Positions 2 to 63,855 of a stretch of 64,000 nucleotides of DNA are shown here, piece by piece. The notes below the pieces were generated by a model, which saw only the letters and a list, made by a program, of their open reading frames with translations, was not told the origin of the DNA and ran no database searches. The DNA is taken from sequence record OQ718158.1; one strand, written 5' to 3'. How positions within the stretch are numbered: position 1 is the stretch's first letter; each line of letters begins with the position of its first letter. The translations under genes and the position numbers were made by a program.

Positions 2-289
2 ATGTCTGATGATTCGAATCTAACAGGTTATTTTTTGCAAGAATCAATGATCAAATTCAGTGAACATTTTCCAGTACTAGATGGTGTGGAGATGTGGCAT
101 GTAAAACCACTCTTCCACACTTTCAGTAAAGAGCACAAAATGTTATTGACTGAGGCTTGTAAATCGAATAAAATATGCCAAATCAAGATTGGTGTAAATG
201 TCTACAAAGGATTAGTCATCTTTTTTGACAACAACAGCAACTACTTTTATATTGTTAAGGAGCATTACGTTGACAAATACAAATACTAA
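2..289 (+). CDS. hypothetical protein (may be 5'-partial)
   Basis: ORF at window edge, phage-like composition. Confidence 0.55.
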   Translation: MSDDSNLTGYFLQESMIKFSEHFPVLDGVEMWHVKPLFHTFSKEHKMLLTEACKSNKICQIKIGVNVYKGLVIFFDNNSNYFYIVKEHYVDKYKY

Positions 290-887
290 TACATACTTTC
301 GTTATCTTCGCCTAGGGCTTTCCCTACGCCCAATCCGTGGTAAGTGTGATTCACTTGCTGATTTGGATTATGCATATGCATTACATTGTGATGGTGTTCA
401 ATATGTATTAGGTGACTATGGCACATTCGAAGAATCCAATGACAGTTCAGAAATTATTGCTGGTGTTGCTAACCTTAACAACATTGCCAATAGTTCTCGT
501 CATGAAATCGTTCTTGAAATTCAGAACTTCATTGAGAAAAATACTGGCAAGCGTACATGGTCATATGTCGGTACTGATGCACAAATGTCAATCGCATTTG
601 GTAACGAAGATGGTTATGTAGCACAACTTATTATGGATTTCGAATCAGAAGAGAAGTTCCTAGAATACAAGGAAAAAATCATCCAATCCTTGTTGCAAAT
701 GGGTATTCCTGAAGATCGTATGCCTGAAATTCAAAGCATTGATGAGTTTGTTCTTATCCCATCTGATGAAAAATATGATGCGATGTTTACAGCACTGAAC
801 ATTCCTGGTGTAGTTGTTGAGTACTTCGATGATGGTGATGCTGACATTTACCTAGATCTCGACGACGATGATGACGATGATGAATAA
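270..887 (+). CDS. hypothetical acidic protein with poly-Asp tail
   Basis: AAGGAG 7 nt before TTG 270 (track start 225 is likely too long); ends DDDDDDDE; terminator follows. Confidence 0.7.
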   Translation: MTNTNTNTYFRYLRLGLSLRPIRGKCDSLADLDYAYALHCDGVQYVLGDYGTFEESNDSSEIIAGVANLNNIANSSRHEIVLEIQNFIEKNTGKRTWSYVGTDAQMSIAFGNEDGYVAQLIMDFESEEKFLEYKEKIIQSLLQMGIPEDRMPEIQSIDEFVLIPSDEKYDAMFTALNIPGVVVEYFDDGDADIYLDLDDDDDDDE

Positions 888-893
888 TACATA

Positions 894-923
894 TAGCCCG
901 ACATAAGTTCGGGCTATTTTTTT
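894..923 (+). terminator. intrinsic terminator
   Basis: TAGCCCGA-cataagt-TCGGGCTA + T-run. Confidence 0.85.
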
Positions 924-933
924 AAGGGGAAAT

Positions 934-1203
934 ATGAATTACAAACATATACAATTCACTTATATGGAATTATTTAAATTACACCATAATCACAGAAGTA
1001 CTAACACAATTAATAAAAATGCGTTTACTCATAAATTATGGTCAAATTACCTAGAAGAATTACGTGAGTATTTTATTGATACTGAAATTTTCATTAATGG
1101 AAAAAAACGAAAGATACTTAGAGTCGATAGTTTTGGTGGTAGATTAGTACTTTCATATAAATTTGATAACGACTTATTCTCTGTTGATTTGGTGAATATA
1201 TGA
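934..1203 (+). CDS. small paralog-array protein (family A)
   Basis: N-terminal IQFTY motif shared with neighbours. Confidence 0.75.
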   Translation: MNYKHIQFTYMELFKLHHNHRSTNTINKNAFTHKLWSNYLEELREYFIDTEIFINGKKRKILRVDSFGGRLVLSYKFDNDLFSVDLVNI

Positions 1204-1460
1204 ATTATAAAGATTTCCAATTAACATTCAAGTGCATTCGTGACCTAGCAAATAAAAATAATAGTATATTTTTAGAAGATACATGTATTGAAATGATTAA
1301 TATTGTGCGTGAGAGGATTAAAGAAAAATTCAGTACTGTAATTATCAACAACGATCATGCAGAATTTTCAGATATAATCATTAAGCTCGATGGTAAAGTA
1401 GAGGTACAGTTCTACACTGATTTTGGATTTACGAGTGTTCCTCTGGAGATATTCCCTTGA
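1200..1460 (+). CDS. small paralog-array protein (family A)
   Basis: FQLTF motif; ATGA overlap with upstream gene. Confidence 0.75.
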   Translation: MNYKDFQLTFKCIRDLANKNNSIFLEDTCIEMINIVRERIKEKFSTVIINNDHAEFSDIIIKLDGKVEVQFYTDFGFTSVPLEIFP

Positions 1461-1768
1461 AATTAAATTTGAATGATGTTCAATTCACGTATAAAAATAT
1501 ATATGGTTTGTATGACATGTATCTTTTTAGTGGGAAGATTGGTGAACATGTCGAATCAAAAGAATCACCATTTATTAATAATTACTATGATTACTTAGAT
1601 TCTATTGCTGAATATATAAAAAAGAATTACAGTACTTACACTGATGGAGATGACATATTTGAATATTCAGGTGTAAAATCTTATCAAGGTATTATCCATG
1701 TAGAATTTCTTGAAAAAACTGATAGGGAATTTATGGAGATTAAAGTTATGAAGTTAACGGACCTATAA
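1457..1768 (+). CDS. small paralog-array protein (family A)
   Basis: VQFTY motif; TTGA overlap. Confidence 0.75.
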   Translation: MKLNLNDVQFTYKNIYGLYDMYLFSGKIGEHVESKESPFINNYYDYLDSIAEYIKKNYSTYTDGDDIFEYSGVKSYQGIIHVEFLEKTDREFMEIKVMKLTDL

Positions 1769-1778
1769 GAGTTGACAT

Positions 1779-2090
1779 ATGAATATTAATGATATACAAT
1801 TCACATACAAATTTTTGTATATCCAATACGCTACGGTTGATGCTGGAGAATATCTCTACGGTGAAATCTATCGTTCGGTATGGATAAAGTTTTTGGATGA
1901 ATTACATGAATATTACCATGATTTGTGTATAGTTCGTGATAATAAAATATACAAATTCCGCGATATTGTTAGTCATAGCGGTAAGCTACGATTGGAATTA
2001 AGTACCGATAGTGATGTTGATTGGATTGGTGTAAATTTACTGGAGTTGGAGAATGAAAAACAACTTAAAGGAAATACAAGTATTTTATAA
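1779..2090 (+). CDS. small paralog-array protein (family A)
   Basis: IQFTYKFLY motif. Confidence 0.75.
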   Translation: MNINDIQFTYKFLYIQYATVDAGEYLYGEIYRSVWIKFLDELHEYYHDLCIVRDNKIYKFRDIVSHSGKLRLELSTDSDVDWIGVNLLELENEKQLKGNTSIL

Positions 2091-3232: not shown

Positions 3233-3517
3233 ATGGCAAATAAATCGAATGAAGTACTTGTTGCTGAAACAATGAAGATGGTTTATGCCATAACAACTAG
3301 TAATGATTTGTCTTACCCAATTAAGTCCAAGTTGAGGGATATAACTCTTCAGGTTATACAGCAGTACTACAAATCTAAACACAAAAGTATTATTAATGTT
3401 TATCGTGACTATGAAAGGATTCGCATTTTGTTCTGGAACAAGAATCGAGTTCGTTCGGAATGTGATATAGAAAACTTTAAATTTGAGAATCTTTATTGTT
3501 ACAAAGCGGGACAATAG
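3233..3517 (+). CDS. hypothetical protein (family A-like)
   Basis: AAGGA RBS, ATG 3233. Confidence 0.65.
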   Translation: MANKSNEVLVAETMKMVYAITTSNDLSYPIKSKLRDITLQVIQQYYKSKHKSIINVYRDYERIRILFWNKNRVRSECDIENFKFENLYCYKAGQ

Positions 3518-3535
3518 CTCAAGTAGTGATATAAT
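3508..3535 (+). promoter_or_regulatory. RGACA-N13-TGATATAAT promoter
   Basis: GGGACA-16 nt-TATAAT with extended -10 TG. Confidence 0.75.
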
Positions 3536-3566
3536 ATTGGGTATGGAACAATAACTAACACAAGGA

Positions 3567-4499
3567 GTGTGTAAAGTGCCAAGTAAAAAGCCAGATTCTG
3601 AAGTATTCAGACTGGTTGATGAAAAATTGAGTTCAATTGGTTCATCGGTAAAAATGGATAGAACAACATACACAACCATATCAAACAAATCAACTTTTTT
3701 CTGTGATGAATGTGGGTTTAGTAAAAATATCATAGTTAGGAATGTGTACAAAAATGGAATATTTTGTCATTGTCCCACATTTAAAACTTTATATAATAAA
3801 TTGGGTGAAATTAATTCAAAATTAAAATTAGATATTTCCACATTCACAACTACAAAAAACAAATCTAGATTTTATTGTGACGATTGTGCGTTTGAAAGAT
3901 ATATGACGGTGCATGATGTTAAGTCTAGAGGTGCATATTGTAAATGTCATTCATTATATTGTATGCCGTTAGATATCGACGAAGCATATAACACTATTAT
4001 GAATAAAATAAAAGATTACTCAAATACAATACATATGGATAAATCTACATACCGTGGTACACAATATAAGGTTAGATTTTATTGTACAGAGTGTAATTTT
4101 GACAAATATATTAATTATAGTAGAGTTAAATGTGGAACTCTTAACTGCAATTGTATCAGACCAATCCCAGAAGAAAGTAAATTATATATTTTAGGAATAT
4201 ATGAACAAAATATTTTAATAAAATATAAAGTTGGTATTTCTACAAAGATTGATAAATCAAGACTAATTAGTATTAGGTCAAAAACTAATTTTATAGTAGA
4301 GGAATTATATTATTTTACTGGAAATACCGAAGTTATTAAAAGTGTAGAATATAATATTTTAAATCTGCTTAAAAATAGTAGTAAATTGTCAAAGGATTAT
4401 TTTGGCGATGGGTATACTGAAACATTTGATTTACAAGATATAAATCTTGTTATTGATTATGTATGTAAATGTTTACTCGAAAATAAATTAAAAATATGA
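3567..4499 (+). mobile_element. putative free-standing homing endonuclease (3 Cys-rich repeats + GIY-YIG-like T5orf172/MUG113-type domain)
   Basis: Three F(F/Y)CxxC...CxC repeats; C-terminal LYILG...YKVGIS...RL...GYTETF. Confidence 0.7.
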
Positions 4500-4524
4500 A
4501 AATCATAAACACAAGGAATGTGAA

Positions 4525-5253
4525 ATGATAGATAATATAAAATTTGCAACAGAAATGGCGAATCAACTCAATATAGCAAATTTTCAAATGTTAACATCTG
4601 TTATGGCTGAACATGCTGCTGCATATTCATCTAGTGGTATACAATGTGGACAAGCTAACATGTTAGCTGATGTTTATAGTGAAGTTCAAAGCAAACAATA
4701 TAGCGTGAAGACATACAAGGATAAGTTCGTAAGTCTTTATATGAATGAAGATATTTCAGAAGACCGCAAATTCACCGATTTTATTATTGAACGCCGTATT
4801 AGTGGGGTTTCAGACCCAAATGCAGAAAGTGATATTGTATTCGATGAGGTATTAAAAGATATATACGAAAATGAATTGAAAAGTAAGAATCATTACAATG
4901 TACGTGAAACTAACACAGTGCTAGTTGGATATGATGAAGACGAACAATATTTCTATTTTCGTATAACAGAAGTTCCATTTGAATATAAAAAACCAACCAC
5001 TACATCTGTAAAAGAATTCACTGAGAAGAGTAAAAACTTCAAGAAACACGAAGGAAACCGTTGTAGTATTAATGGTTATGATGAAAATGGTGTTCATGTT
5101 TATGAATGGGTTTCACCTAATTGCCAGACATACACCCGTTGCTTGAAGAAACGTTATAATTTAGAAGACAATGAATCCTTCTACTTTAAAGTTAAGAAAC
5201 AAGGTTATACTCGCCCTGAAGATTCAGAATTGATGGGTATGGTATATTTCTAA
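4525..5253 (+). CDS. hypothetical protein
   Basis: 242-aa ORF, AAGGA RBS. Confidence 0.75.
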   Translation: MIDNIKFATEMANQLNIANFQMLTSVMAEHAAAYSSSGIQCGQANMLADVYSEVQSKQYSVKTYKDKFVSLYMNEDISEDRKFTDFIIERRISGVSDPNAESDIVFDEVLKDIYENELKSKNHYNVRETNTVLVGYDEDEQYFYFRITEVPFEYKKPTTTSVKEFTEKSKNFKKHEGNRCSINGYDENGVHVYEWVSPNCQTYTRCLKKRYNLEDNESFYFKVKKQGYTRPEDSELMGMVYF

Positions 5254-5262
5254 GGAACTGTT

Positions 5263-5544
5263 ATGGATTTTTACCTACACACATGGTCATACGAACAATA
5301 CATTACATTATATCTTGAGATTATTAATACTGATCCCAGATATGGTTGTGATTTCGCTGATATTATAAAAGAGTATGCAGATGAGTTTGAGTTTGTATAT
5401 CTTGGTTCTGAACTATTTGTAAAGAGTGTAGGTAAAACCGGACGCATCACTGAAATTGATTATGATACTGTTAGTGTGAATTTCTATGTTGATTTTCCTT
5501 GTGATGGCGTTGATGGTGTATATTGTCTATATGAAATAATTTAA
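5263..5544 (+). CDS. small hypothetical protein (family A-like)
   Basis: RBS; YLGSELFV...GRITEIDY beta region. Confidence 0.7.
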   Translation: MDFYLHTWSYEQYITLYLEIINTDPRYGCDFADIIKEYADEFEFVYLGSELFVKSVGKTGRITEIDYDTVSVNFYVDFPCDGVDGVYCLYEII

Positions 5545-5550
5545 ATTTTA

Positions 5551-5575
5551 AGGCCAGCGTTTGCTGGTCTTTTTT
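5551..5575 (+). terminator. intrinsic terminator
   Basis: AGGCCAGC-gttt-GCTGGTCT + T-run. Confidence 0.8.
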
Positions 5576-5588
5576 CGCAGGTACAAAG

Positions 5589-5891
5589 ATGCTCAGTATA
5601 GATTTAATTAACAGTACTATAAAGTTGTTGGCTGATGTAGTAAAAGAATCCAATGGAACTTTATACCCATCAATGTATAAAATCTTTGAACGATACATCA
5701 AGGATTGTAATATATCCTTATATGGACTGGCAGTTGATATAGACGACCACTATGAAATTAATACTTCATATAAAACTGGAATGTTAATTGGTATTAATAT
5801 AAAGATGGGATATTTTCCTTATTACTGTATAGGATTACCAGATAGTACTATGGTAGATTATCCAGCCAGTATTATTAAACTAAGAGGATAA
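5589..5891 (+). CDS. hypothetical protein
   Basis: ORF in + strand gene run. Confidence 0.65.
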   Translation: MLSIDLINSTIKLLADVVKESNGTLYPSMYKIFERYIKDCNISLYGLAVDIDDHYEINTSYKTGMLIGINIKMGYFPYYCIGLPDSTMVDYPASIIKLRG

Positions 5892-7164: not shown

Positions 7165-7428
7165 ATGAATATCCAAGATAGATTGCAATTGTTGCACACA
7201 CTTGAAGAAGCTGCTTTTGAACTTGTTAATAAAATTGCACAAGAACTCCCAAAAGGAACCAAAGTTCGTGTTCGTGAAATGGATTATTTAACGGGAAAAA
7301 TTGATGAAAAAGTTCTAACAGTGATCAAAGTAACATACTATGAATCAGAGTTATCAATTCAATGTAATTCAGATAATGGTTACGTTTCCTACTATGGTAC
7401 AGATGTAGATATAGAGGTAATAAAATGA
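7165..7428 (+). CDS. small hypothetical protein (helix + SH3/KOW-like)
   Basis: Start reassigned to ATG 7165; PKGTKVRV. Confidence 0.7.
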   Translation: MNIQDRLQLLHTLEEAAFELVNKIAQELPKGTKVRVREMDYLTGKIDEKVLTVIKVTYYESELSIQCNSDNGYVSYYGTDVDIEVIK

Positions 7429-8567
7429 CCCTTTTACAAATATATGAAGATTTAATGCACTTATGTAATACCCGTGATGCTTTCTTTTATGTGGATCATA
7501 AAAGTCCTGCTGGTGGAACATATCGTGTATTCAGTTATCGTCTAGCATCATATACCGATTTCATGCAACCCAATGCATTAGAAACCCGTGGTTCTATGTG
7601 GGAAATTGATGAAGACGGTGATATGATTCGTTGTGCTGCTCGTACTATGAAAAAGTTCTTCAATGCTTACGAAAATCCTGCTACAATGTTCCCTGCTGAT
7701 ACCTCATTCGATGACATTGCAGTAGTGATGCCTAAGTTGGATGGTTCAGTAATCAGTACTTACCGTGATAATGATGGTGTAATTCGTTGTAAATCACATA
7801 CTGCATTGTATTCAGACCATGCGATTAACAGTACTCGTCTTCTCAATGAGAACCAAAATTTGTATCAATACATTGACGAAGCAGACCGTTTGGGCTATAC
7901 TGTTAATCTGGAGTATACAAGTCCAGAGTACCGTATTGTATTACCATATCAGGTTGAACAATTATTTGTACTAAACGTTCGCAATCGTAAGAGTGGTGAA
8001 CTATTATGTGGTTCTGCATTACGTAATAAGTTCCCATGCCTTGCACAGTACAGTACTAACATGACAGGTAAAGATATTCATTACACTTTCCCTGCTCGTG
8101 CTACATTCAAAGAAAGTGTTGAAGAAGTTAAGAAAATGCTTGACATTGAAGGTTTTGTGTGCATCCTAAATAATGGTACAATGTGCAAAATCAAAACCGA
8201 CTGGTATTGTTCTTTGCATTTAACGAAAGACAGTATTATAATCGATTCCCATTTATATGAAGCTGTATTAAATGGTTCGAGTGATGATTTAAAACAGTTG
8301 TTCAGTACTGACGAATATGCTACCCAAAAGATATTAAGAATGGAACAACTAGTCTTTTCGTGCTATAATGCTTTACAAGATGAAGTTGAAAGCTTCGTCA
8401 AGGAACACAAGCACTTGGAGCGAAAGGAATTCGCTAAGAAGGTTCAGGAGTGTTTAACTAATGAACTGAATCGTCAGGGCTTGGCCTTTGCAATGTACAA
8501 CAATAAGAAAGTCGATTACAAAGAGACTCTTATTAAGTACATGAAAATTGTACTAAAGGATTTTTAG
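7425..8567 (+). CDS. rnlA: RNA ligase 1 (T4 Rnl1-like)
   Basis: Motif I KLDGS, ETRG, NLEYTSPEYRIVLPY, EGFV, KIKTDWY. Confidence 0.92.
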   Translation: MTLLQIYEDLMHLCNTRDAFFYVDHKSPAGGTYRVFSYRLASYTDFMQPNALETRGSMWEIDEDGDMIRCAARTMKKFFNAYENPATMFPADTSFDDIAVVMPKLDGSVISTYRDNDGVIRCKSHTALYSDHAINSTRLLNENQNLYQYIDEADRLGYTVNLEYTSPEYRIVLPYQVEQLFVLNVRNRKSGELLCGSALRNKFPCLAQYSTNMTGKDIHYTFPARATFKESVEEVKKMLDIEGFVCILNNGTMCKIKTDWYCSLHLTKDSIIIDSHLYEAVLNGSSDDLKQLFSTDEYATQKILRMEQLVFSCYNALQDEVESFVKEHKHLERKEFAKKVQECLTNELNRQGLAFAMYNNKKVDYKETLIKYMKIVLKDF

Positions 8568-9389: not shown

Positions 9390-10322
9390 ATGCCAACTAT
9401 CACACTAACAGTTGGATTGCCTGGGTGTGGTAAAACTACATGGGCAGTGCAAGAGATTAAAAAAGCCAAATCCAAGACTATCAACATCAACCGTGATGAT
9501 ATTCGTGAATCTATGGCTGGGTCACATGATGCTTACAAATTCAACGATGCTAATGAGCAGTACGTAACTAATTTACAGTTCAGTGCAGCAAATTCAGCCG
9601 CAGAGAATGGTTGGAACATCATCATATCCGATACGAACCTTAAACAACATTTCCGTAATCTATGGAAAGTATGGGCTATAGATAATGGTTATGATTACAA
9701 AGAAAAGAATTTCTATGATGATTTTGTACCTAATGAAGACCGTGGTGCAGATGTTCATGAATTCTTTAAGATTAAAGAGTTCGTAAAACTTTGTAAGAAA
9801 TATAACCTCCAGCGTGAGCGTTCAGTACAAGATAATATCATTGACACTATGGCAGATACGTACTATTATAGTAAGGCATTACACATTGGTTACTATGGTA
9901 ATTCACGAGAAGCTGCTATTATCGTTGATATCGACGGTACTCTTGCTCATAAATGGGGACGTAACCCGTTCGATGAAAGTACTGTACTCCAGGATACACC
10001 AGACGAAGAAGTTATTTTGTCGATTATCGCAGAAGCAGTTTTTCATAAACGCAAGATTATCGTCATGAGTGGGCGTACTGAAGGGTGTCGTGCTGATACC
10101 GAACAGTGGCTTAAGAATTGGGGTGTTCCTTACGATGCGTTGTTTATGCGAGGCATCGATGATAAACGTCCTGATGATGTTGTTAAATTCGACCTGTACA
10201 TGAAAAATGTGGTTGATCATTACGATGTTAAAAAGGTTTATGATGACCGCAATCAAGTTGTTTTTATGTGGCGTAAGCTACTTGGGTTGAAAGTTTTCCA
10301 AGTGGCAGAAGGAAATTTCTAA
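9390..10322 (+). CDS. pseT: polynucleotide 5'-kinase/3'-phosphatase
   Basis: P-loop GLPGCGKT, NRDDIR, HAD motif DIDGT, SGR, DDR. Confidence 0.93.
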   Translation: MPTITLTVGLPGCGKTTWAVQEIKKAKSKTININRDDIRESMAGSHDAYKFNDANEQYVTNLQFSAANSAAENGWNIIISDTNLKQHFRNLWKVWAIDNGYDYKEKNFYDDFVPNEDRGADVHEFFKIKEFVKLCKKYNLQRERSVQDNIIDTMADTYYYSKALHIGYYGNSREAAIIVDIDGTLAHKWGRNPFDESTVLQDTPDEEVILSIIAEAVFHKRKIIVMSGRTEGCRADTEQWLKNWGVPYDALFMRGIDDKRPDDVVKFDLYMKNVVDHYDVKKVYDDRNQVVFMWRKLLGLKVFQVAEGNF

Positions 10323-21275: not shown

Positions 21276-21794
21276 ATGCAGCAATATAAATTATCTGAAG
21301 ATCAAAGTGATTTATTTTTCAATCACATGTTTTTAATTGATGAATTTGCCGAAAGTTAAAATTCAGAGGCAATAGCTATAGTTAAAAAGTGGTATTCTTG
21401 CTATAACAAGAACAAAAAATGGTATTGGTTGAATAGAAATTTAAAATCATTTCTAGGAACAATAACTAGTACTGATAGTATTGAACTAATATATAGTTCC
21501 ATTGGCTATAGTTACTTAACCAAGCATAATAATACGTCAATAGAGTCTGGCTTTAAAATCAAGCGTCTAATGAAATTGACGGGATTGAGTGCAGAAACTA
21601 TACAAAACGATACAGAAAAGTTATGGAAGATTATAGAATTCATGAATAAAAATATGTCATTTATATATAGAAACTATGATATATTCACTGATGTACGACA
21701 ATTTTATAAGAGTCCATATTCACTTAATGAGAAATATTTCCGACACATGGAATTATGCTCAACTATGGTTGATGAATGGAATTTAGAGGATTAA
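21276..21794 (+). pseudogene. hypothetical gene interrupted by one in-frame TAA (21357-21359)
   Basis: ATG 21276 with AGGTGG RBS is in frame with track ORF 21429-21794; single stop between. Confidence 0.55.
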
Positions 21795-21795
21795 T

Positions 21796-22323
21796 ATGAA
21801 ATACACTGCTCTTAGCCCAACTGATACTAAAGTATGGTTGAGTAATTTGAACAAAACTATTATTTTAACCAAAAAAGTGATATCAACAGCTAATTCATTA
21901 GATGTAAATATCAAGAAGAATGTTCTTAAATATCATCACCGAAGTAAACTTAGTACTTGGTACTCCAATATTTTTTACGGCTTATATGGGATGGATGATA
22001 TTTTAATTGGTACATCATCTGGGTCATGCTTCAGTGCTGGTGGTATGTGCTTTATGGATTTGGGTTTTTCATTATCCGATGAAGAAATCGAGTTTAAACA
22101 ATTCCGTGACAAGTTACTGGGTTCGGGTGATATCAAGTTCTGTACAGAATTAATGGGAGCATGGGACGTTTATGCAGCGAAACCATTTGACATTGAAGAA
22201 TCAGATGTGCTAAACTACCTTCGTGTTCTTAAAATACATTCGAACTGTAAAACCAAATTACAATCCCTAGGAGTATATGATGAAACACTTGACGTGGTTG
22301 AAGATAGCCGAAGTCGTGGCTGA
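21796..22323 (+). CDS. hypothetical protein
   Basis: GAGG RBS. Confidence 0.7.
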   Translation: MKYTALSPTDTKVWLSNLNKTIILTKKVISTANSLDVNIKKNVLKYHHRSKLSTWYSNIFYGLYGMDDILIGTSSGSCFSAGGMCFMDLGFSLSDEEIEFKQFRDKLLGSGDIKFCTELMGAWDVYAAKPFDIEESDVLNYLRVLKIHSNCKTKLQSLGVYDETLDVVEDSRSRG

Positions 22324-22759
22324 AGAGAGTAAATGCATTTCACAGAAAGTTGGTTGTGTTATTGTTAAAAATAACCGAGTATTGAGTACTGGTTATAATG
22401 GCACTCCATCTAAACAACCTAACTGCTGTGACGCTAATGAGCACTTAGTTAATGGTGGACGTTTCCAAGACTGGGTTAGCGATGACGCAAAGCATGAACA
22501 CCATGAATGGAGTAATATCCATGAAATCCATGCTGAAATGAATGCATTGTTATACAGTTCACCTACCGAACGTCAGGGAGCAACACTTTACACAACGCTG
22601 CAACCATGCTATACTTGTTCTAAGTTGATCGCGGGAAGTGGTATTGCTCGCGTGATTTATCACAAAAGTTATCCTCGCACTCCACCAGAAGCTATTAAAG
22701 TACTGGAAGATGCTGGGATTATTGTAAATTGCATTTATGATAAGGGGTTGGGACTTTGA
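22277..22759 (+). CDS. cd: dCMP deaminase
   Basis: KVGCVIV, GYNG, HAEMNA, PCYTC. Confidence 0.9.
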   Translation: MMKHLTWLKIAEVVAEESKCISQKVGCVIVKNNRVLSTGYNGTPSKQPNCCDANEHLVNGGRFQDWVSDDAKHEHHEWSNIHEIHAEMNALLYSSPTERQGATLYTTLQPCYTCSKLIAGSGIARVIYHKSYPRTPPEAIKVLEDAGIIVNCIYDKGLGL

Positions 22760-23016
22760 CTTTCTTGATTTTAGGTATCCCATTTGCAGTTGTGATTCTT
22801 GTACTTTTAGTGATGATGGTATTAAATGATAATACTACTCCACCAGTGATGCGTAATCATGAAGTACGATTTTCAGCACAAAACAACAAGTACTACATTG
22901 TAAATTGTTTAACTTGTAAAGAGTATAAAGTAACTGGTAAATTTGGTTTTACCATTTATTATAAAGACCGTGTTGAAGCTGACATGATTTGTCAGAAACT
23001 TAATACGGTAGAATAA
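22756..23016 (+). CDS. small membrane-anchored protein
   Basis: N-terminal hydrophobic helix. Confidence 0.65.
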   Translation: MTFLILGIPFAVVILVLLVMMVLNDNTTPPVMRNHEVRFSAQNNKYYIVNCLTCKEYKVTGKFGFTIYYKDRVEADMICQKLNTVE

Positions 23017-23046
23017 AAAAAAAAGGAGCCATAAGGCTCCTTTTTC
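23013..23046 (+). terminator. intrinsic terminator (possibly bidirectional)
   Basis: A-run + GGAGCC-ataa-GGCTCC + T-run. Confidence 0.88.
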
Positions 23047-23137
23047 TTTTGTTAGTACACAACTTGTTTGAATTTCAGGAAAACTCTTAGATCCAACAAC
23101 GAGTTCAGTACTACCACGTTATTTGTTGACAAAAGCA

Positions 23138-23165
23138 TAGACATTATACATTAGTGTGATATAAT
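23138..23165 (+). promoter_or_regulatory. RGACA-N13-TGATATAAT promoter
   Basis: TAGACA-16 nt-TATAAT with TG. Confidence 0.75.
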
Positions 23166-23300
23166 CATTCAAAAGAAGGTAAAAAGGTGGGATGATTCTG
23201 CGAGGGAATTTGTGAAGTGATATAAAAAACAATTTGACTTAAGTTAAATCTTCCTATAATATTATTTATGTAATCAACAATCAACTAAGAGGGTTAACCA

Positions 23301-23909: not shown

Positions 23910-24001
23910 TATTAGATACAAAATAATAATATTATAATAAGAGGATGATAAAGTGGTACATCCTTTGTTATAAGTTCACATACACTAGGAGTGTATAAAC
24001 T

Positions 24002-24262
24002 ATGACAAATTTACAAAACTTAACATCTCTTGTTTTTTATGCAACAACTATTGTATATTGCATTACATTAGTTTTAACATGTTTCATCTATAAAGACTAC
24101 AAACGTGGTTTTATGGATTCCAGTACACACAAATTTGCATCCAAGTTAGAAGCAGGAATTTACTATGTTCTATCAATTTCTTATGGAGCATGTTTACTTA
24201 CACTAGGGTTGCTGATATACTGGTTGTATACGGCACTTTTTGCACAAGGAGTTATTTCATGA
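24002..24262 (+). CDS. small membrane protein
   Basis: Two hydrophobic helices; AGGAG RBS. Confidence 0.7.
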   Translation: MTNLQNLTSLVFYATTIVYCITLVLTCFIYKDYKRGFMDSSTHKFASKLEAGIYYVLSISYGACLLTLGLLIYWLYTALFAQGVIS

Positions 24263-24852: not shown

Positions 24853-24874
24853 GAATAATAATTATAAAGAGAGA

Positions 24875-25075: not shown

Positions 25076-25084
25076 GGAGTAAAT

Positions 25085-26385: not shown

Positions 26386-26394
26386 GAGTTTAAA

Positions 26395-31503: not shown

Positions 31504-31548
31504 TATCAGTACTGTTATAGTGGCAGTACTTTTTAATTGGAGATTACT

Positions 31549-37984: not shown

Positions 37985-38057
37985 TTTAAGTCTCCTTATC
38001 ATTATTATATAGTATATTTATGCAACTTTCCTTTAGTTCGCTTTTAGTAACCTCTAA

Positions 38058-45812: not shown

Positions 45813-46214
45813 ATGACTACAGTTGATGATATCTACAGTACTATACGAAATATGAGTACAGATAGAAAAGTGTTTGGTGACAAAGAAAAGTCAAAATGTT
45901 ATGGCATCGATTCTTTTGATATTATTTCATACGAATATAATAACAACGGGACCAGTTCACTAAACATTGTGTGTCCACGAGATCCAGAAAATAATTTCAT
46001 GTACGTTGAAATTAACAATGATGGTATGTTCTTTACTAAAGTATATAAAGGTGGGAAAGAATACGAACCCATCGAAGTAATGAATGAAGAGAAATTCTTC
46101 CAAGAAGATACCATCATCAATCTTGGATTTAGTTACAATGACTATCAAGTACTGGATCATGATTTTAAACGATACTATAATGGTTTTCTAAAGGAGTTAA
46201 CGATTTACTTATGA
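45813..46214 (+). CDS. hypothetical protein (family B)
   Basis: MNEEKFFQ motif. Confidence 0.7.
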   Translation: MTTVDDIYSTIRNMSTDRKVFGDKEKSKCYGIDSFDIISYEYNNNGTSSLNIVCPRDPENNFMYVEINNDGMFFTKVYKGGKEYEPIEVMNEEKFFQEDTIINLGFSYNDYQVLDHDFKRYYNGFLKELTIYL

Positions 46215-47449
46215 AAAACAATTTTCTAGAACAAACTATTGTGAAACACTTAGCTGGTTCACAGGCGTATGGCACAAGCACACCAGAAAGTGATACCGAT
46301 TATCGTGGTATCTTCCTTGCAAACAAAGAATTTATCCTAACTCCTTTTTTTAATGTTAAGGAAGTTTCAGATCCTTCTGAAGAAGATACTAAATTTTATG
46401 AAGTCAATCAGTACTTAAGTCTGTATACTGAAGCTAACCCAAACATTCTTGAATCACTATGGGTTAAACCTGAACACATCGTAGAAAGTACTGAAATCTA
46501 TGACTATCTACGCTCATTCAATCAGCAATTATTGAGTTCAAAGATTGCACACTCATACAGTGGATATGCATACAATCAGGTTAAGCGTATGTCTAATCAC
46601 CACGGCTGGCTCGATAAGGAACGAATTGCTGAACGTAAACTAAATGAAATTTTAGAAGAACATCCAGTTGACGAAGTACTTTCATGGATGTATGATACAT
46701 TCCCGCAGTATTTGGTAGACCGTTTGAATAAATCCAATCTTCACCCATTCAATGCTACAAAAATTGATTTTGAAAAATACATGCGTGATACTTCATTACA
46801 ATTAGTTTCAACACAAGCATTGAAACAATATCATTTTGTACGTTTAGTACATAATTATAGTACTGATAAAGTATTAGATCGTGATTTCAATTTATTGAAT
46901 TACAATTCAGGGTATGAACTAATCCATTACGGTGAAAACATCTTTGGGGTAATTATCAACCCGAATGAAAGTACAGTGAATGCTGATGGTTCACTACGTT
47001 ACTTCAACAAAGAACGTACTACAGAAGAATTGAAAGTTCGTCCTGAACTCATTGTAAAATTCAATGAAAAGGAATACAAAGAAAATAGTGAGAACCGTAA
47101 GAGTTATCACAAATGGAAGCAGAATCGTAATGCCAAACGTGCTATTCTTGAATCACACCACGGTTATGACTGCAAACATGCTATGCATACAATCAGGCTG
47201 CTGAATACAGCACAGGAAGCACTTGAAACTGGTATCATCCAAGTTCACCGACCGGATGCTGCTATGTTGATGGACATTCGTAACGGGAAGTGGTTGTATC
47301 AAGAAGTTATGGATTATTTCAACGAAAAGGTTGACTACATCCGAAATGTGGCGTATCATAAGACCCATCTACCGAAGCGACCAAACATAAAGTTGGCTAC
47401 GAAGGTACTATTAGATATCCGTGAAATGCAATGGTACAGTAAAAAATAA
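46211..47449 (+). CDS. Pol-beta-family nucleotidyltransferase (RlaP-like)
   Basis: GSQAYGTSTPESDTDYRG, NPNILE, GYD.KHAMH..RLL. Confidence 0.85.
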   Translation: MKNNFLEQTIVKHLAGSQAYGTSTPESDTDYRGIFLANKEFILTPFFNVKEVSDPSEEDTKFYEVNQYLSLYTEANPNILESLWVKPEHIVESTEIYDYLRSFNQQLLSSKIAHSYSGYAYNQVKRMSNHHGWLDKERIAERKLNEILEEHPVDEVLSWMYDTFPQYLVDRLNKSNLHPFNATKIDFEKYMRDTSLQLVSTQALKQYHFVRLVHNYSTDKVLDRDFNLLNYNSGYELIHYGENIFGVIINPNESTVNADGSLRYFNKERTTEELKVRPELIVKFNEKEYKENSENRKSYHKWKQNRNAKRAILESHHGYDCKHAMHTIRLLNTAQEALETGIIQVHRPDAAMLMDIRNGKWLYQEVMDYFNEKVDYIRNVAYHKTHLPKRPNIKLATKVLLDIREMQWYSKK

Positions 47450-52028: not shown

Positions 52029-52401
52029 ATTCCACCAGCATTGTTCTATACATGAATGTGATGATTGTGGTATGAACATGAGTGACATTTATACAGTTTC
52101 CTGTAAAGGATTCAAATTCACTCACGGTGAACCTGCATATTGTTATGGCACAGAAGAAGGTGATATCGAAGTAGTTCTGAAAGAATTGTTCCAGTACTTG
52201 CAAAGTGCTGGTCATGATGTTACAATGCCCACATATTACGAAGATGATTATGACTCACATGTAGAAGAAAATACATATTATAATCAATTCGTTCATGGTA
52301 ATGGCTTTATCACATACCTTCATGAGAATGGTATTGAGGTAAAAACTAAGTACACTAGTGATGATTACGAAAGTGATGACTCTATGGAGATTGAAGATTG
52401 A
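52009..52401 (+). CDS. acidic hypothetical protein
   Basis: CDDCG near N-terminus. Confidence 0.7.
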   Translation: MQIKKIKFHQHCSIHECDDCGMNMSDIYTVSCKGFKFTHGEPAYCYGTEEGDIEVVLKELFQYLQSAGHDVTMPTYYEDDYDSHVEENTYYNQFVHGNGFITYLHENGIEVKTKYTSDDYESDDSMEIED

Positions 52402-59994: not shown

Positions 59995-61110
59995 ATGAAA
60001 AAGTATTTGGTTGGTGGCTACGTTCGTGACCGTTTAATGGGCATCCGTGCAAAAGACAAAGATTATGTTATTGTTGGTGCTACCGAATCCGATATTAAAT
60101 ACTTGCAAAGTATTGGATACAAGCAAGTAGGTAAGGATTTCCCTGTATATCTAAGTCCAGAAGGTAATGAACACGCATTAGCCCGTACTGAGCGTAAAAC
60201 TGGTACTGGATATGGTGGCTTCGAAGTGAATACAAAAGGTGTGACACTAGAACAAGATCTATATCGTCGTGATCTCACAATCAATAGTATTGCATATGAT
60301 CCAGTACTCCAGATTCACATCGACCCTTATGGCGGGAAAGCTGATATCAAGAACAAAGTACTTCGTCATGTATCAGAACACTTTAAAGAAGATCCATTGC
60401 GTGTTCTACGTTTGGCCCGTTTCGCAACGCGTTACTCCGACTTTACAATCCATGATGATACTATGACAATGTGTAAAGATATGGTTAGTACTGGTGAACT
60501 AGACCATCTAGTCCCAGATCGTGTTTTTGTTGAATTCGAAAAAGCACTTTCTGAAGAAAACCCTTCCAAGTTTATCAAAACTCTGGTACAATTTGGTTAT
60601 TACGAAAAGGCATTTACTACAGTTCCAGTTACCAAGAAACGTCTGGAATTAATTGATGCTATCGCTACAAATTGTACAGAAGAATATAAACCATATTTCT
60701 TATGGACAGTACTTCTTGAAAATGAAGAAGTAAATAATGATTCAGTACTTAACGGTTCCATTAAGGTTCCAGTTAAGTACGTGAAGTTTAGTAATTACAT
60801 CAAGCGTTTCCGTGAAGATATTAAAACCTTCCGTAAGAAGACCCCAGTTGAAATGGGGCAAATCTTACTGGATATGAATATCAAAAACAATGGTGGTGAA
60901 GATTTCCTTTACAAAGTACTGGAAAACTTCATTTTGAACAAAGAAATTGATTCTGAACTTGAAGATTTGATTATTAAAGTTTATGATCGTTATACTGATG
61001 TTGAATTACCTGATATTCAGCAGTTAGTGAAAGATGGTGAACTCCAAACATCGGAGATTCGTGATTTTGTTGCTGAATTGCGTATTGAAGCAATCAAGCA
61101 AATGTTCTAA
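59995..61110 (+). CDS. cca: CCA-adding tRNA nucleotidyltransferase
   Basis: VGGYVRD, DKD, VGKDFPV, ARTERK, DLYRRDLTINSI, EDPLRVLRLARF. Confidence 0.95.
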   Translation: MKKYLVGGYVRDRLMGIRAKDKDYVIVGATESDIKYLQSIGYKQVGKDFPVYLSPEGNEHALARTERKTGTGYGGFEVNTKGVTLEQDLYRRDLTINSIAYDPVLQIHIDPYGGKADIKNKVLRHVSEHFKEDPLRVLRLARFATRYSDFTIHDDTMTMCKDMVSTGELDHLVPDRVFVEFEKALSEENPSKFIKTLVQFGYYEKAFTTVPVTKKRLELIDAIATNCTEEYKPYFLWTVLLENEEVNNDSVLNGSIKVPVKYVKFSNYIKRFREDIKTFRKKTPVEMGQILLDMNIKNNGGEDFLYKVLENFILNKEIDSELEDLIIKVYDRYTDVELPDIQQLVKDGELQTSEIRDFVAELRIEAIKQMF

Positions 61111-61115
61111 AAGCT

Positions 61116-62155: not shown

Positions 62156-62398
62156 ATGCTCAGTTTTCGTGAACAATTAGCAAAAGGCCAATTCGCTGCT
62201 AAAGCTCAAACATCCATTCCTAAAAAGTCTGCTTTCTTAGGGACGATTACAGAAGATGGTTATTGTGATTATAATGCACCAGAAGATTCATGGTACATTA
62301 CGAAAGACACAAAACGTGGTAATAGACTTCACAAAAGTACCATTGCTCGCAAACAACGAAAAGAATTGAAAAAAATTCGATTCGGTGAAGAAGAATAA
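62156..62398 (+). CDS. small basic hypothetical protein
   Basis: GGGAG RBS, ATG 62156. Confidence 0.7.
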   Translation: MLSFREQLAKGQFAAKAQTSIPKKSAFLGTITEDGYCDYNAPEDSWYITKDTKRGNRLHKSTIARKQRKELKKIRFGEEE

Positions 62399-62408
62399 AA
62401 TATAAATT

Positions 62409-62438
62409 AAGGACTCTGATTACAGAGTCCTTTCTTTT
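62409..62438 (+). terminator. intrinsic terminator
   Basis: AAGGACTCTG-atta-CAGAGTCCTT + TCTTTT. Confidence 0.85.
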
Positions 62439-62449
62439 CGGAGAATATA

Positions 62450-62926
62450 ATGATACATGAACACCTAGGTAATTTGTTTGAATTGTTCAACACTGTTACT
62501 GATGATCAAACCGCGTTGCATATAATCGCTCATGGTTGTAATGCACAGGGTAAGATGGGTTCGGGTTTTGCAAAAGAACTAAGAAATCGTTACCCGATGG
62601 CATATGATGATTATAAAGCATATGAAAAGGAAATGGGATTTCTAAGAACTGGACAAATTTCATATTCTTCTATAAGTGATGATTTGCTTATCGCAAACTG
62701 CATTACCCAACAGTACTATGGTAATGACGGTTCTAAGTATGTAAGTTATGATGCAATCGATGATGTTTTCAAACAACTCAAATACTTATGTAACGTTGAA
62801 CGCACTGTTCATGTACACTTCCCGAAAATTGGAGCCGATTTAGGCGGTGGTAACTGGAACGTTATCAAAGAAATCATTGACCACAGACTGGTTAATGCAG
62901 AAAAACACTTATACATTCTAAAATAA
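62450..62926 (+). CDS. macrodomain (Appr-1-p processing) protein
   Basis: GNLF, AHGCNAQGKMGSGFA, PKIGADLGGGNW. Confidence 0.9.
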   Translation: MIHEHLGNLFELFNTVTDDQTALHIIAHGCNAQGKMGSGFAKELRNRYPMAYDDYKAYEKEMGFLRTGQISYSSISDDLLIANCITQQYYGNDGSKYVSYDAIDDVFKQLKYLCNVERTVHVHFPKIGADLGGGNWNVIKEIIDHRLVNAEKHLYILK

Positions 62927-62936
62927 ACAAAAGGAC

Positions 62937-63254
62937 TTGACAAAAATGACTATGACCGTTAAACTACTAAACATCAACAGCGTTGGCCCAGTACTAGCAA
63001 TTCTACAAAATGATGCACCAGAAGCAGTAGTAGTTAACTACCCAGCACAGCTAGGTACTGACGAACAAGGTGAAATCATTCTACGTGATTACCTAGAATT
63101 CATTAGTTCTGAAAAAGGCGTTATTTTTTATAAATCCAACATCATTAGCATCAGCGATGCAAACCCTGCACTAGTTGAAGCTTATGTTGAAGCAATCAAG
63201 GCTATCGAAGAAAAACCAGCACTGATTGTTCCTGATAACAAAATCATTCTATAA
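62937..63254 (+). CDS. conserved hypothetical protein (possibly Sm-like fold)
   Basis: AAGGA RBS; ends ALIVPDNKIIL; fold guess is weak. Confidence 0.65.
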   Translation: MTKMTMTVKLLNINSVGPVLAILQNDAPEAVVVNYPAQLGTDEQGEIILRDYLEFISSEKGVIFYKSNIISISDANPALVEAYVEAIKAIEEKPALIVPDNKIIL

Positions 63255-63266
63255 TAGAGGTATCTA

Positions 63267-63644
63267 ATGGCTGCTCAAAACGTTAAAGTTAAAACTATCC
63301 AAGCTATCGTAGTACTGAAAGATTCCACTCCATCACCAAAAGAACTGGTTATGGCTGGTATGACAATGCTACATCAGTACAATCCAGAATCACCTAACTA
63401 TGTACTGGAATACGAAGCGAAGCAGTTTAAAGAACATTGGCAGTCATGGATTAAAGATAATGAAATGGAACAGGTTGTTTATGCTGCTGATGACATTTTC
63501 GAATTAGAACAAATCGAATATCTAGCAGGACAACAATCTGTACCATTGAGTATCTTCGGTAATGGAGAAGAAGTTTTAGTACTGGGACCATTTACCGCTG
63601 ATGCCATCATGCATTTACTAAGTAATTGTAAAAAAGTTGGCTAA
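63267..63644 (+). CDS. degenerate PTH2-fold protein
   Basis: QAIVVLKD...W..W...QVV...EL...VLVLGP...I..L..CKKV; catalytic motifs not evident. Confidence 0.55.
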   Translation: MAAQNVKVKTIQAIVVLKDSTPSPKELVMAGMTMLHQYNPESPNYVLEYEAKQFKEHWQSWIKDNEMEQVVYAADDIFELEQIEYLAGQQSVPLSIFGNGEEVLVLGPFTADAIMHLLSNCKKVG

Positions 63645-63855
63645 AAAACAAATATTATCAGGTTACCGTAATAACACGTTGCACTACAATGACTTAAAGT
63701 ACTGGGTTGACCCACACAACAATAAGTCATTGTTGCTGTACAGAGATAAATTTCGAGATTTGTACGGTATATATGACACCCAGTTAATATACTTAGTTGA
63801 TACCGAACATTTTGCTCCTATGGTATACTTGTATTGCTTGTATAATTCCAAATAA
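63637..63855 (+). CDS. hypothetical protein
   Basis: TTG start overlapping upstream gene. Confidence 0.5.
   Translation: MAKKQILSGYRNNTLHYNDLKYWVDPHNNKSLLLYRDKFRDLYGIYDTQLIYLVDTEHFAPMVYLYCLYNSK

Follow-up and report, generated by a model that had tools for sequence, protein, structure and literature searches.

Enrichment of AGTACT throughout the phage genome

The six-letter palindrome AGTACT occurs about eight times more often than chance throughout the genome of Escherichia phage vB_Ec-M-J, a 378-kb Asteriusvirus, and of its close relatives, and it is kept there by selection, which points, tentatively, to an undiscovered protein that reads it as a mark of the phage's own DNA. The stretch analyzed in detail (the window) comprises 64,000 nucleotides, bases 62001–126000 of the genome. 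It contains 167 AGTACT sites dispersed over positions 73–63703, with a mean spacing of about 380 bp, against 18–21 expected, while the whole genome contains 983 against about 115 (111–121), an 8–9-fold excess. The original prediction of an over-represented palindrome in this DNA was confirmed. It had estimated about 165 sites, with 26 in the first 10 kb and 30 in the second; the actual numbers are 26 and 31, and the six positions that it gave (73, 820, 997, 1146, 1332 and 1631) are all right. The GC content is 34.7%, rather than the 33% assumed there.

The expectation was estimated in several ways, some of which had been proposed in advance as tests that the excess should survive. Dinucleotide-preserving shuffles of the window gave 18.4 ± 4.3 sites, with a maximum of 30, and base composition gave 21.5. 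The Markov-3 model, one of the controls so named, gave 59, so that the ratio is still 2.8, whereas the Markov-4 ratio of 1.18 is uninformative because 65% of all AGTAC 5-mers in the window lie inside the motif. Concerning the frequency of GTAC, also named beforehand as a possible trivial cause, this tetramer is itself 2.1–2.3-fold enriched, but 167 of its 456 occurrences (37%) are flanked by A and T, against about 11% expected. Codon usage was controlled by shuffling synonymous codons within genes, which gave 40.3 ± 5.7 sites against 154 observed in the coding sequences of the window, and 234.5 ± 12.6 against 827 observed genome-wide (z 47). Finally, it had been anticipated that a similar enrichment of many unrelated hexamers would undermine the claim; AGTACT is the top hexamer by z and the only outlier, and the next two (CAGTAC and GTACTG) are its own sub-words. 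In contrast, 23 of 64 other 6-bp palindromes are absent from the genome.

The sites occur in all three reading frames and between genes. In the window, 154 sites lie inside genes, and the counts by frame are AGT|ACT 73, A|GTA|CTN 54 and NAG|TAC|TNN 25. Genome-wide the three frames account for 414, 263 and 150 sites, plus 156 intergenic or boundary sites, and the two out-of-frame readings are enriched 5.6- and 8-fold. Of all Ser-Thr dipeptides, 53% are written AGT-ACT, and Ser-Thr and Val-Leu dipeptides are themselves in excess. The motif extends as a partial palindrome, C-AGTACT-G, with C at −1 in 79 and G at +6 in 81 of the 167 sites of the window; TTCAGTACTG occurs 12 times. The preferred extended form is (T)(T)C-AGTACT-G(A)(A), with G at −1 and C at +6 disfavoured. 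The flanks are reverse-complement symmetric even inside plus-strand genes (C at −1 42%, G at +6 47%).

The spacing of the sites is near-exponential and slightly more regular than random (cv 0.92, mean gap 387 bp genome-wide), and fewer genes lack a site than predicted by a Poisson distribution (133 against 164). The longest AGTACT-free stretch of the window (3369–5612, 2.2 kb), which the original prediction had linked to a putative homing endonuclease, does exist. It covers EcMJ_170, annotated as 'endonuclease' (3576–4499, GC 26%), EcMJ_171 and EcMJ_172, and contains no AGTAC or GTACT at all. Its length is however not significant, since about 2.5 gaps this long are expected genome-wide, and mobile endonuclease genes as a class are not significantly depleted of sites (13 against 18.3, P 0.13). 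The gap is compatible with recently acquired DNA that has not yet gained sites, but this is not proven. Elsewhere in the genome, a 5.3-kb stretch (genome positions 21389–26696) lacks the site altogether; it is a tandem array of 24 paralogues, which may explain this. At the other extreme, three sites are clustered at 31508–31570 (31508, 31525 and 31565), two of them in the short intergenic spacer between EcMJ_223 and EcMJ_224 and the third just inside EcMJ_224. This is one of the few intergenic clusters in the window, and no consensus sigma-70 promoter was found there.

A by-product of the analysis was a conserved 8.5-kb island with no ACT on the sense strand, where AGTACA replaces AGTACT. This nearest permitted variant appears at 5.8 per kb in all frames, so the DNA-level demand persists even where the exact palindrome is forbidden. 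Outside the island, non-palindromic AGTAC shows no polarity (350 against 354).

Conservation of the sites and distribution of the enrichment

Conservation at synonymous positions in relatives had been suggested beforehand as a test of selection, and it was found. In the comparison with PBECO4, 42 of 65 sites (65%) are conserved, against 36–38% for control words (37% for all hexamers), and third codon positions inside the motif are 83% conserved against 66% for the background (p 6e-5). Between genera, the sites are about twice as conserved as control hexamers (36% against 18% and 50% against 31%), yet most of them turn over while the density is kept.

The enrichment is 7–11-fold in four genera, being shared by RaK2, GAP32 and Yersinia fHe-Yen9-04, and the same flank rule holds in these three phages and in PBECO4. 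Agrobacterium Atu_ph07 is not enriched, and in Pseudomonas PA5oct the site is depleted (1 against 11.3 expected). A sample of E. coli K-12 DNA has 0.06 sites per kb against 2.75 in the phage, which makes phage DNA about 45 times denser in sites than host DNA. No published report of the enrichment was found.

Association with early promoters in the terminal repeat

The strongest functional clue lies outside the window, where the original prediction could not see it. In the 21.5-kb terminal repeat, 28 of 31 consensus sigma-70-type early promoters carry AGTACT in fixed register, at −5 (18–19 times) and/or +15 (11–16 times) relative to the −35 element, and the same registers occur in phage 121Q. 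The intergenic DNA of the terminal repeat has 12 sites per kb. The early promoters are clearly related to each other, so part of the fixed register could reflect the copying of a promoter cassette, although against that two different registers occur in two promoter subfamilies. In the window, only 1 of 10 promoter-like matches has the site in this arrangement (AGTAC|TTGCAA-N17-TACAAT, 52193–52232, plus strand; genome position 114198). It lies inside gene EcMJ_251, so it may be fortuitous.

Interpretation of the iterated palindrome

The explanation that we favour, although only tentatively, is that AGTACT, read as (not G)AGTACT(not C), is the recognition site of a twofold-symmetric, sequence-specific, double-stranded-DNA-binding factor, common to the enterobacterial Rak2-like jumbo phages and most likely phage-encoded. 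In this view, the sites of the terminal repeat would act as operators, placed immediately upstream of the −35 element and immediately upstream of the −10 element of host-type early promoters, 20 bp apart, an arrangement that would suit shut-off, or other control, of early transcription. The roughly 850 further copies, about one per 390 bp and slightly more evenly spread than random, would be kept by selection on site density, and the factor could load along the whole phage chromosome and mark, organize or protect it. The data themselves demonstrate the enrichment, its symmetric, DNA-level nature, the selection at synonymous positions, the sharing across the clade, the promoter registers and the contrast with host DNA, while it is by inference that a protein is taken to read the site, that this protein is taken to be phage-encoded, and that any outcome is attributed to its binding. 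There are no experimental data at all, and binding, for instance to a CAGTACTG duplex, was not assayed. No candidate reader was found among about 450 small proteins of the genome and 21 larger proteins of the window, which show no HTH, RHH or other sequence-specific DNA-binding domain at Pfam sensitivity (one of these surveys covered only 25 of 39 families). It is also worth considering that a site-specific binder with about 1,100 sites per genome copy would need to be very abundant.

The interpretation given in the original prediction was partly supported. It is right that the sequence belongs to a jumbo phage, that the enrichment is genome-wide and acts at the DNA level in all frames, that it resembles HIP1 in being an iterated palindrome maintained by selection, and that no cognate factor is identifiable in the window. 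Its list of mechanisms was broad (a methylase or modifier, a DNA-organizing protein, a packaging or recombination signal, or biased repair), and the evidence favours the DNA-organizing or DNA-binding protein, while biased repair left no signature, neither methyltransferase of the genome could be tied to AGTACT, a Chi-like signal is unlikely, and the gap over the endonuclease is not statistically meaningful.

Among the alternatives, a methylation target, the closest analogue of HIP1, is the least unlikely, though doubtful, and it overlaps with the favoured explanation because a methylase is also a reader. An orphan phage methyltransferase could modify AGTACT, which offers one C and two A per strand, and the methylated sites could serve a methyl-directed process such as strand discrimination, the timing of replication or packaging, or self-marking against a phage nuclease. 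Two orphan methyltransferases are present: EcMJ_155 (PF05869 Dam, E 1e-32), encoded about 800 bp upstream of the window, which would be a candidate if its specificity has changed, and EcMJ_443 (PF00145 C5, E 9e-35). However, RaK2 DNA behaves as Dam- and CpG-methylated, and bisulfite found m5C at CpG (PMC3622015), which accounts for both enzyme types without AGTACT; EcMJ_443 is the orthologue of RaK2 gp194 (62% identity). A third adenine methylase, in fHe-Yen9-04, is present in the non-enriched Atu_ph07 and absent from this phage. The DNA of fEgEco12 is cut as predicted by ten enzymes, but ScaI, which recognizes AGTACT, is not among the enzymes listed and has not been tried on these phages. In the absence of a methylome or a ScaI digest, these observations do not decide whether a cognate methyltransferase exists, and methylation alone gives no reason to accumulate sites. 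Less likely is a site for a DNA-processing enzyme, either the phage type II topoisomerase, cutting A^GTAC^T with a 4-base stagger, or a nicking or cleaving endonuclease that seeds recombination-dependent replication along a very long genome. The palindrome with its 4-bp core and even spread would suit it, and the phage encodes topoisomerase II subunits, the gp46/47-like nuclease, UvsX/UvsY, many HNH enzymes and a TnsA-like restriction-fold protein, but type II topoisomerases are not known to need a strict hexamer, the promoter registers are not explained, and no enzyme could be linked to the site.

Neutral molecular drive, in which a motif-restoring very-short-patch-type mismatch repair or biased gene conversion continually regenerates AGTACT without any function for the sites, is also unlikely. 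Such repair raises CCWGG in E. coli, it would mimic conservation at synonymous positions, and the phage recombines heavily, having UvsX, UvsY and gp46/47 homologues. Nevertheless, none of the 18 one-mismatch neighbours is depleted (range 0.5–2.4 times expectation), no transition neighbour is below 1 and the deamination products AGTATT and AATACT are at 1.49 and 1.16; no Vsr-like domain was seen in the Pfam surveys, the effect is far larger than known very-short-patch effects, and the promoter registers, the even spread and the de novo appearance of AGTACA in the island are not explained. An RNA-level signal, with AGUACU as a processing or decay site of a sequence-specific ribonuclease, is very unlikely. 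The island with no ACU in its sense transcripts suggests that an ACU-directed RNase matters in this system, and the window is rich in RNA-repair genes, but the flank preferences are reverse-complement symmetric, which an RNA signal does not need, the promoter-associated copies lie upstream of the transcription start at fixed positions, and an RNA cleavage site would not be expected to be selected for in nearly every gene, late structural genes included. Similarly improbable is the recruitment or titration of a host protein, although the enrichment is confined to phages of Enterobacterales. The obvious candidate was the nucleoid-occlusion factor SlmA, whose consensus site GTGAGTACTCAC has AGTACT at its centre (PMC3020112), but the phage sites are not SlmA sites: only 6 have at least 4 of 6 matches to the GTG...CAC flanks, against 23.8 expected, and G at −1 (0.098 against 0.189 background) and C at +6 (0.072 against 0.167) are at about half their background frequency. 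No other host factor with this site is known to us. Finally, a by-product of base composition, GTAC frequency, codon or dicodon usage, or avoidance of other palindromes is refuted by the controls described above and by the intergenic copies, even though AGT and ACT are frequent codons and the phage carries tRNA-Ser(GCT) and tRNA-Thr(TGT).

A more speculative reading, unlikely but not excluded, is that the enterobacterial Rak2-like jumbo phages carry a genome-wide self-identity code, in which an unknown, clade-specific protein family reads (not G)AGTACT(not C) about every 400 bp and couples the shut-off of early promoters with coating, organization or protection of the phage chromosome, which lacks a phage nucleus and heavy base modification. 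A second, RNA-level code would exist alongside it, the 8.5-kb operon with no ACU, which would show that the same phages fight, or wield, a three-base-specific ribonuclease. Both would be new kinds of sequence-level adaptation in viruses.

Comparison with known systems

The closest known system is HIP1 (GCGATCGC), the highly iterated palindrome of cyanobacteria. It is likewise a short palindrome, hyper-abundant genome-wide, present in all reading frames and between genes, and conserved between related genomes beyond background; its function is still unresolved, and a role in chromosome organization has been proposed (PMC5861425). AGTACT differs in that it occurs in a virus and not in a cell, in being an AT-rich 6-mer with a soft 8-mer extension, and in its magnitude (8–11-fold, against 15–300-fold for HIP1). 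HIP1 is recognized by two orphan methylases (PMC4390886 and PMC13756078), while none could be tied to AGTACT, and the fixed positions on promoters are not reported for HIP1. Long-range (10–90 kb) periodicity was not analyzed, the genome, at 357 kb, being too short for it.

Chi (GCTGGTGG) and other self-identifying oligomers (the uptake sequences USS/DUS, and KOPS) are also short words over-represented along a whole replicon, which let a dedicated machine tell self DNA from foreign DNA or read its orientation, and the density contrast between phage and host is of that kind. Those words are however asymmetric and orientation-dependent, Chi being recognized by RecBCD/AddAB, while AGTACT is a palindrome with symmetric flanks. 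Moreover, authentic Chi is separately enriched 8–13-fold in this phage (23 and 11 copies against 1.7 and 1.3 expected), so that the Chi role is already filled.

The SlmA-binding sequence of E. coli is also palindromic and is read by a dimeric HTH protein of the host, but the phage sites prefer C/G exactly where that sequence has G/C. With the operators of phage repressors or early-gene shut-off factors, the sites of the terminal repeat share the character of short palindromes overlapping the −35 and −10 regions of host-type promoters, paired about two helical turns apart. Operators are normally confined to a few control regions, while here more than 85% of the copies lie inside genes, spread over 357 kb. 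As for the ScaI restriction-modification site, it is the same hexamer, but restriction targets are avoided by phages. Avoidance does hold in this phage for 27 other palindromic hexamers (ratio 0.2 or less) and for GCGC (0 against 216), whereas AGTACT shows the opposite sign; it is the Pseudomonas relative PA5oct that does avoid it.

Genome analyzed and statistical support of the AGTACT enrichment

The window is 100% identical to bases 62001-126000 of Escherichia phage vB_Ec-M-J (OQ718158.1), a linear genome of 378,573 bp with direct terminal repeats of 21,525 bp, which belongs to the genus Asteriusvirus. Close relatives at 98-99% identity are fEgEco12, Ecwhy_1, Turkey3, WPEC3 and CMSTMSU, while PBECO4, 121Q and their group are about 76-82% identical. 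The whole unique genome (357,048 bp) was considered, so that the enrichment could be judged genome-wide.

AGTACT occurs 167 times in the window, while dinucleotide-preserving shuffles gave 18.4 ± 4.3 and never more than 30. It is the most deviant hexamer under base-composition, dinucleotide and Markov-3 expectations, and the next two are its own sub-words CAGTAC and GTACTG. Of the 456 copies of GTAC, 37% are flanked by A...T, against about 11% expected. The Markov-4 ratio of 1.18 is uninformative, because two thirds of all the AGTAC 5-mers belong to the motif. Shuffling synonymous codons within each gene, which keeps every protein and the codon usage of each gene, gave 40 ± 6 sites against 154 observed in the window genes, and 234.5 ± 12.6 against 827 observed genome-wide (z 47). 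All three reading frames are enriched: 414 of 785 Ser-Thr dipeptides are written AGT-ACT (121 expected), A|GTA|CTN occurs 263 times against 47 expected, and NAG|TAC|TNN occurs 144 times against 18 expected. The proteins are bent too, with 785 Ser-Thr dipeptides against 526 expected and 756 Val-Leu dipeptides against 587 expected. The phage encodes five tRNAs (OQ718158.1 291423-294842), which include tRNA-Ser(GCT), which reads AGT/AGC, and tRNA-Thr(TGT), i.e., those for the two amino acids of the in-frame reading AGT-ACT, which encodes 53% of all Ser-Thr dipeptides. RaK2 also carries Ser and Thr tRNAs, and the motif may be shaping tRNA demand.

The observation that AGTACT is strongly over-represented is thus confirmed. 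The two outcomes that had been named in advance as able to overturn it, an observed/expected ratio near 1 once GTAC frequency and dicodon usage are controlled, or a similar enrichment of many unrelated hexamers, were looked for and did not occur, and an artefact of composition, GTAC frequency, codon or dicodon usage is rejected by four null models. One detail of the original prediction does not hold up: the 2.2-kb gap at 3369-5612, which covers a putative homing endonuclease, is no longer than chance allows, and mobile endonuclease genes are not significantly poor in sites, so that the gap gives no significant evidence of amelioration.

Genome-wide distribution of AGTACT and avoidance of other palindromes

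The genome has 983 sites against about 111-121 expected. Of the 64 palindromic hexamers, 23 have no copy in 357 kb (for example CCATGG, 0 against 51 expected; GCATGC, 0 against 45; TGGCCA, 0 against 46) and 27 are at or below 0.2 of expectation. In the window, for example, GGTACC and CGTACG are both absent. GCGC is absent from the genome too (0 against 216). GAP32 shares this extreme avoidance, with 21 of 56 absent in 50 kb. AGTACT, at 8.8-fold, stands alone, as the next highest palindrome is GATATC at 1.6. Outside the terminal repeat, the gaps between sites are close to exponential, with a mean of 387 bp and a cv of 0.92, the sites are uniform along genes, and fewer genes lack a site than Poisson predicts (133 against 164). 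A 50-kb sample of Escherichia coli K-12 has 3 sites, or 0.06 per kb, against 2.75 per kb in the phage. An ORF-free stretch of 0.84 kb without AGTACT lies between the endonuclease VII gene and the baseplate hub genes (OQ718158.1 196201-197037), with the same position in GAP32 at 177397-178200. In fHe-Yen9-04, an adenine methyltransferase gene occupies this position, and the stretch could be a decayed gene, a non-coding RNA or an origin.

A double-stranded-DNA signal under selection

The flanks of the sites are reverse-complement symmetric even for sites inside + strand genes: C precedes the site in 42% and G follows it in 47%, while G before and C after are the rarest bases. Against PBECO4 (26 kb aligned, 82.5% identity), 42 of 65 window sites are conserved, compared with 37.7% of all hexamers and 36% of hexamers of the same composition (p 6e-6). 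PBECO4 has 64 aligned sites, 42 of them shared, so that about a third of the sites has turned over while their number stayed equal. Third codon positions inside the motif are 82.8% conserved against 65.9% elsewhere (p 6e-5), while first and second positions show no difference. Between genera, sites are about twice as conserved as control words (36% against 18.5%, and 50% against 31%). This is the pattern expected for selection on site density with moderate purifying selection on existing sites.

Phylogenetic spread

In 40-50-kb samples, AGTACT is the top hexamer in Klebsiella phage RaK2 (125 against 11 expected), Cronobacter phage GAP32 (105 against 15), Yersinia phage fHe-Yen9-04 (82 against 11) and 121Q (105 against 9), all of which show the same C/G flank rule. 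The AGTACT-rich genera are Asteriusvirus, Alcyoneusvirus, Mimasvirus and Eneladusvirus. It is not enriched in Agrobacterium phage Atu_ph07 (3 against 5), whose capsid protein is 58% identical, and it is depleted in Pseudomonas phage PA5oct (1 against 11.3 in the segment 100001-140000), such that the same word is avoided there and accumulated in the enterobacterial genera. The trait therefore belongs to the enterobacterial Rak2-like genera and has outlasted extensive sequence divergence, and in the genomes sampled here the motif is a sequence signature of this clade. Literature searches on AGTACT in phages, on promoters and ScaI in RaK2, CBB, fEgEco12 and Sharanji, and on over-represented palindromes in phages found no mention of the enrichment.

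AGTACT at the promoters of the terminal repeat

The terminal repeat, which lies outside the window, holds 142 sites (6.6 per kb), of which 81 are in the 31% of it that is intergenic (12 per kb). Of 31 consensus sigma-70-type promoters found there (TTGNNN-N16-18-TATAAT), 28 carry AGTACT at one or both of two fixed registers: AGTAC|TTGCAA, where the site ends on the first base of the -35 element, and AGTACTG|TATAAT, where the site abuts the -10 element. The two registers are 20 bp apart, a third copy often lies about 23 bp further upstream, and 121Q shows the same registers. This is how operators look, although binding itself was not tested. In the window itself only 1 of 10 promoter-like matches has the site, and 154 of the 167 copies are intragenic. 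The left-terminal 1.7 kb (OQ718158.1 1-1760) is non-coding and holds about 16 AGTACT copies within repeated units such as ...gcAGTACTgaatgatAGTACTgaataatagttcccct, which may have a link to DNA ends, packaging or ejection.

Regions devoid of AGTACT and an ACT-free island

Two stretches next to the terminal repeat have no AGTACT. The first one (genome 21389-26696) belongs to a tandem array of 24 paralogous genes of about 70 codons with overlapping starts and stops, located directly after the terminal repeat (OQ718158.1 21594-28260), most of which has no AGTACT. Common descent can explain this lack of sites, so no conclusion is drawn from it.

The second stretch (OQ718158.1 28769-37225; 8,457 bp, with about 20 + strand genes of unknown function) contains not one ACT trinucleotide on the sense strand, where about 130-210 are expected and about 25 per kb is normal. 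The complement AGT is normal there, CTC, CTA and TCT are low, and no other stretch of the genome is like it. The borders are sharp, and the island is conserved across the genus, being present in 121Q (7.5 kb, positions 12359-19870 of L009, the 121Q locus examined) and CMSTMSU (8.5 kb, positions 9069-17530 of L010, the CMSTMSU locus), which rules out a sequencing artefact. Inside the island, AGTACA occurs 49 times against 4 expected, in all three frames (16, 16 and 14 copies, with 3 outside gene models) and in unique contexts, with 2.2 times the density of AGTACT elsewhere. Paralogues inside the island have 0 ACT, 0 AGTACT and 2-7 AGTACA, while their paralogues outside have 5-13 ACT and 1-5 AGTACT, and at some aligned columns AGTACA faces AGTACT. 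The occurrence of AGTACA-only DNA in this region suggested a polar signal, such as replication direction or a primase site, but this was rejected because there is no polarity elsewhere and the asymmetry is explained by the total absence of ACT on that strand. Concerning homologues of the island in other genera, the gene tested is restricted to Asteriusvirus, and no ACT-free stretch longer than 0.5 kb exists in the 40-50-kb samples of RaK2, GAP32 and fHe-Yen9-04, whose whole genomes were not scanned.

These results can be read as two superimposed constraints, a DNA-level demand for the palindrome that persists everywhere, and a separate sense-strand ban on ACT that forces the nearest permitted variant. 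A sense-strand, all-frame ban on three bases is what evasion of a sequence-specific endoribonuclease would produce. MazF (ACA), ChpBK (ACY) and Kid (UUACU) are precedents, and ACA-less transcripts escape MazF (PMC5408214). The island thus suggests a new case of site-free transcripts evading an endoribonuclease, in this case ACU-specific, but this is an inference and no nuclease was identified. In the window there is a concentration of RNA-repair functions (7425-8567, 9390-10322, 46211-47449 and 59995-61110), namely RNA ligase, polynucleotide kinase, an RlaP-type 'RNA repair pathway' nucleotidyltransferase (PF10127, E 4e-16) and tRNA nucleotidyltransferase, and a cyclic-phosphate-processing receiver domain protein lies somewhere in 62-239 kb. 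This fits a phage under attack by RNA-cleaving defences.

Search for a protein that reads the site

The genome encodes a Dam-family adenine methylase, EcMJ_155, which ends about 800 bp before the window, and a short C5-cytosine methylase, EcMJ_443. The latter is the orthologue of RaK2 gp194, and RaK2 DNA was reported to carry m5C at CpG and to resist Dam-, Dcm- and CpG-sensitive enzymes (PMC3622015), whereas AGTACT has no CpG. The DNA of fEgEco12 is cut as predicted by ten enzymes, among which ScaI was not used, so there is no global hypermodification (PMC13070987). ScaI should cut these genomes into more than a thousand fragments unless the site is modified. The co-occurrence of methylases with the enrichment was not helpful, as the Dam family is too widespread to inform, and a further adenine methylase, that of fHe-Yen9-04, has the wrong distribution.

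Pfam scans of about 450 small proteins (through three pseudo-alignments), 21 window proteins and 20 island proteins found no recognizable sequence-specific DNA-binding domain. A ParE-like domain seen in the first 62 kb is not in the island, and the TnsA-like protein was not located. The claim of the original prediction that the cognate factor is not identifiable in the window therefore remains true for the whole genome at this sensitivity. An unannotated ORF of 396 aa (window 36812-38002, - strand) fills a 1.3-kb gap in the GenBank annotation, between the anaerobic ribonucleotide reductase genes and EcMJ_234. It has RCC1 repeats (PF00415, E 4e-10), like the 14 tandem 'regulator of chromosome condensation' paralogues at 333-351 kb, and PBECO4 has no DNA at this position.

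ALTERNATIVES tested

A biased repair of the very-short-patch type should drain the convertible neighbours of the motif, but none of the 18 one-mismatch neighbours is depleted below 0.5, and the deamination products are above 1. The host nucleoid-occlusion protein SlmA binds GTGAGTACTCAC (PMC3020112), but the phage sites avoid those flanks, as only 6 sites have at least 4 of 6 matches, against 24 expected. LexA boxes were considered because CAGTACTG contains both LexA half-site words, but they were dropped, since no excess of the required 18-bp spacing was seen and the promoter copies lack the second half-site on inspection by eye. A Chi-like role is unlikely, as the motif is symmetric and authentic Chi (GCTGGTGG), the host recombination hotspot, is itself enriched 8-13 fold, with 23 copies on the + strand against 1.7 expected and 11 on the - strand against 1.3 expected. 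In the window, Chi is at 7509, 15132, 19701 and 22036 (+ strand) and at 52032 (- strand), while nine + strand copies lie in the terminal repeat against two on the other strand, which suggests protection of one DNA end against RecBCD. Finally, an RNA-level role of AGTACT conflicts with the flank symmetry and with the untranscribed promoter copies.

Discussion

The enrichment is real, strong and apparently unreported. While the analysis establishes it directly, its explanation is a matter of inference, and the best-supported one is a site for an unidentified, twofold-symmetric DNA-binding factor of this phage clade, which would act as an operator at early promoters and as a dense genome-wide tag of phage DNA. 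Methylation-based and enzyme-site variants are not excluded. The interpretation given in the original prediction, which left open a phage methylase or modifier, a DNA-organizing protein, a packaging or recombination signal or biased repair, is partly supported.

Phages are textbook avoiders of short palindromes, and this one removes 23 of them completely. A palindrome that the same genome accumulates about eight-fold, and that selection has kept across at least four genera, is taken to imply a dedicated reader that nobody has described. The identity of such a reader would explain how a 378-kb phage genome, without a phage nucleus or hypermodified bases, is recognized, regulated or organized inside the cell. 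It would also give the long-standing HIP1 problem a small, fast and genetically tractable model.

In comparison with known systems, AGTACT works like HIP1 in cyanobacteria and shares three of its descriptive features. The link to a methylase was not tested, and the magnitude of the enrichment is lower than that of HIP1. It seems thus reasonable to consider the motif as a HIP1-like iterated palindrome, and not as a member of the HIP1 family.
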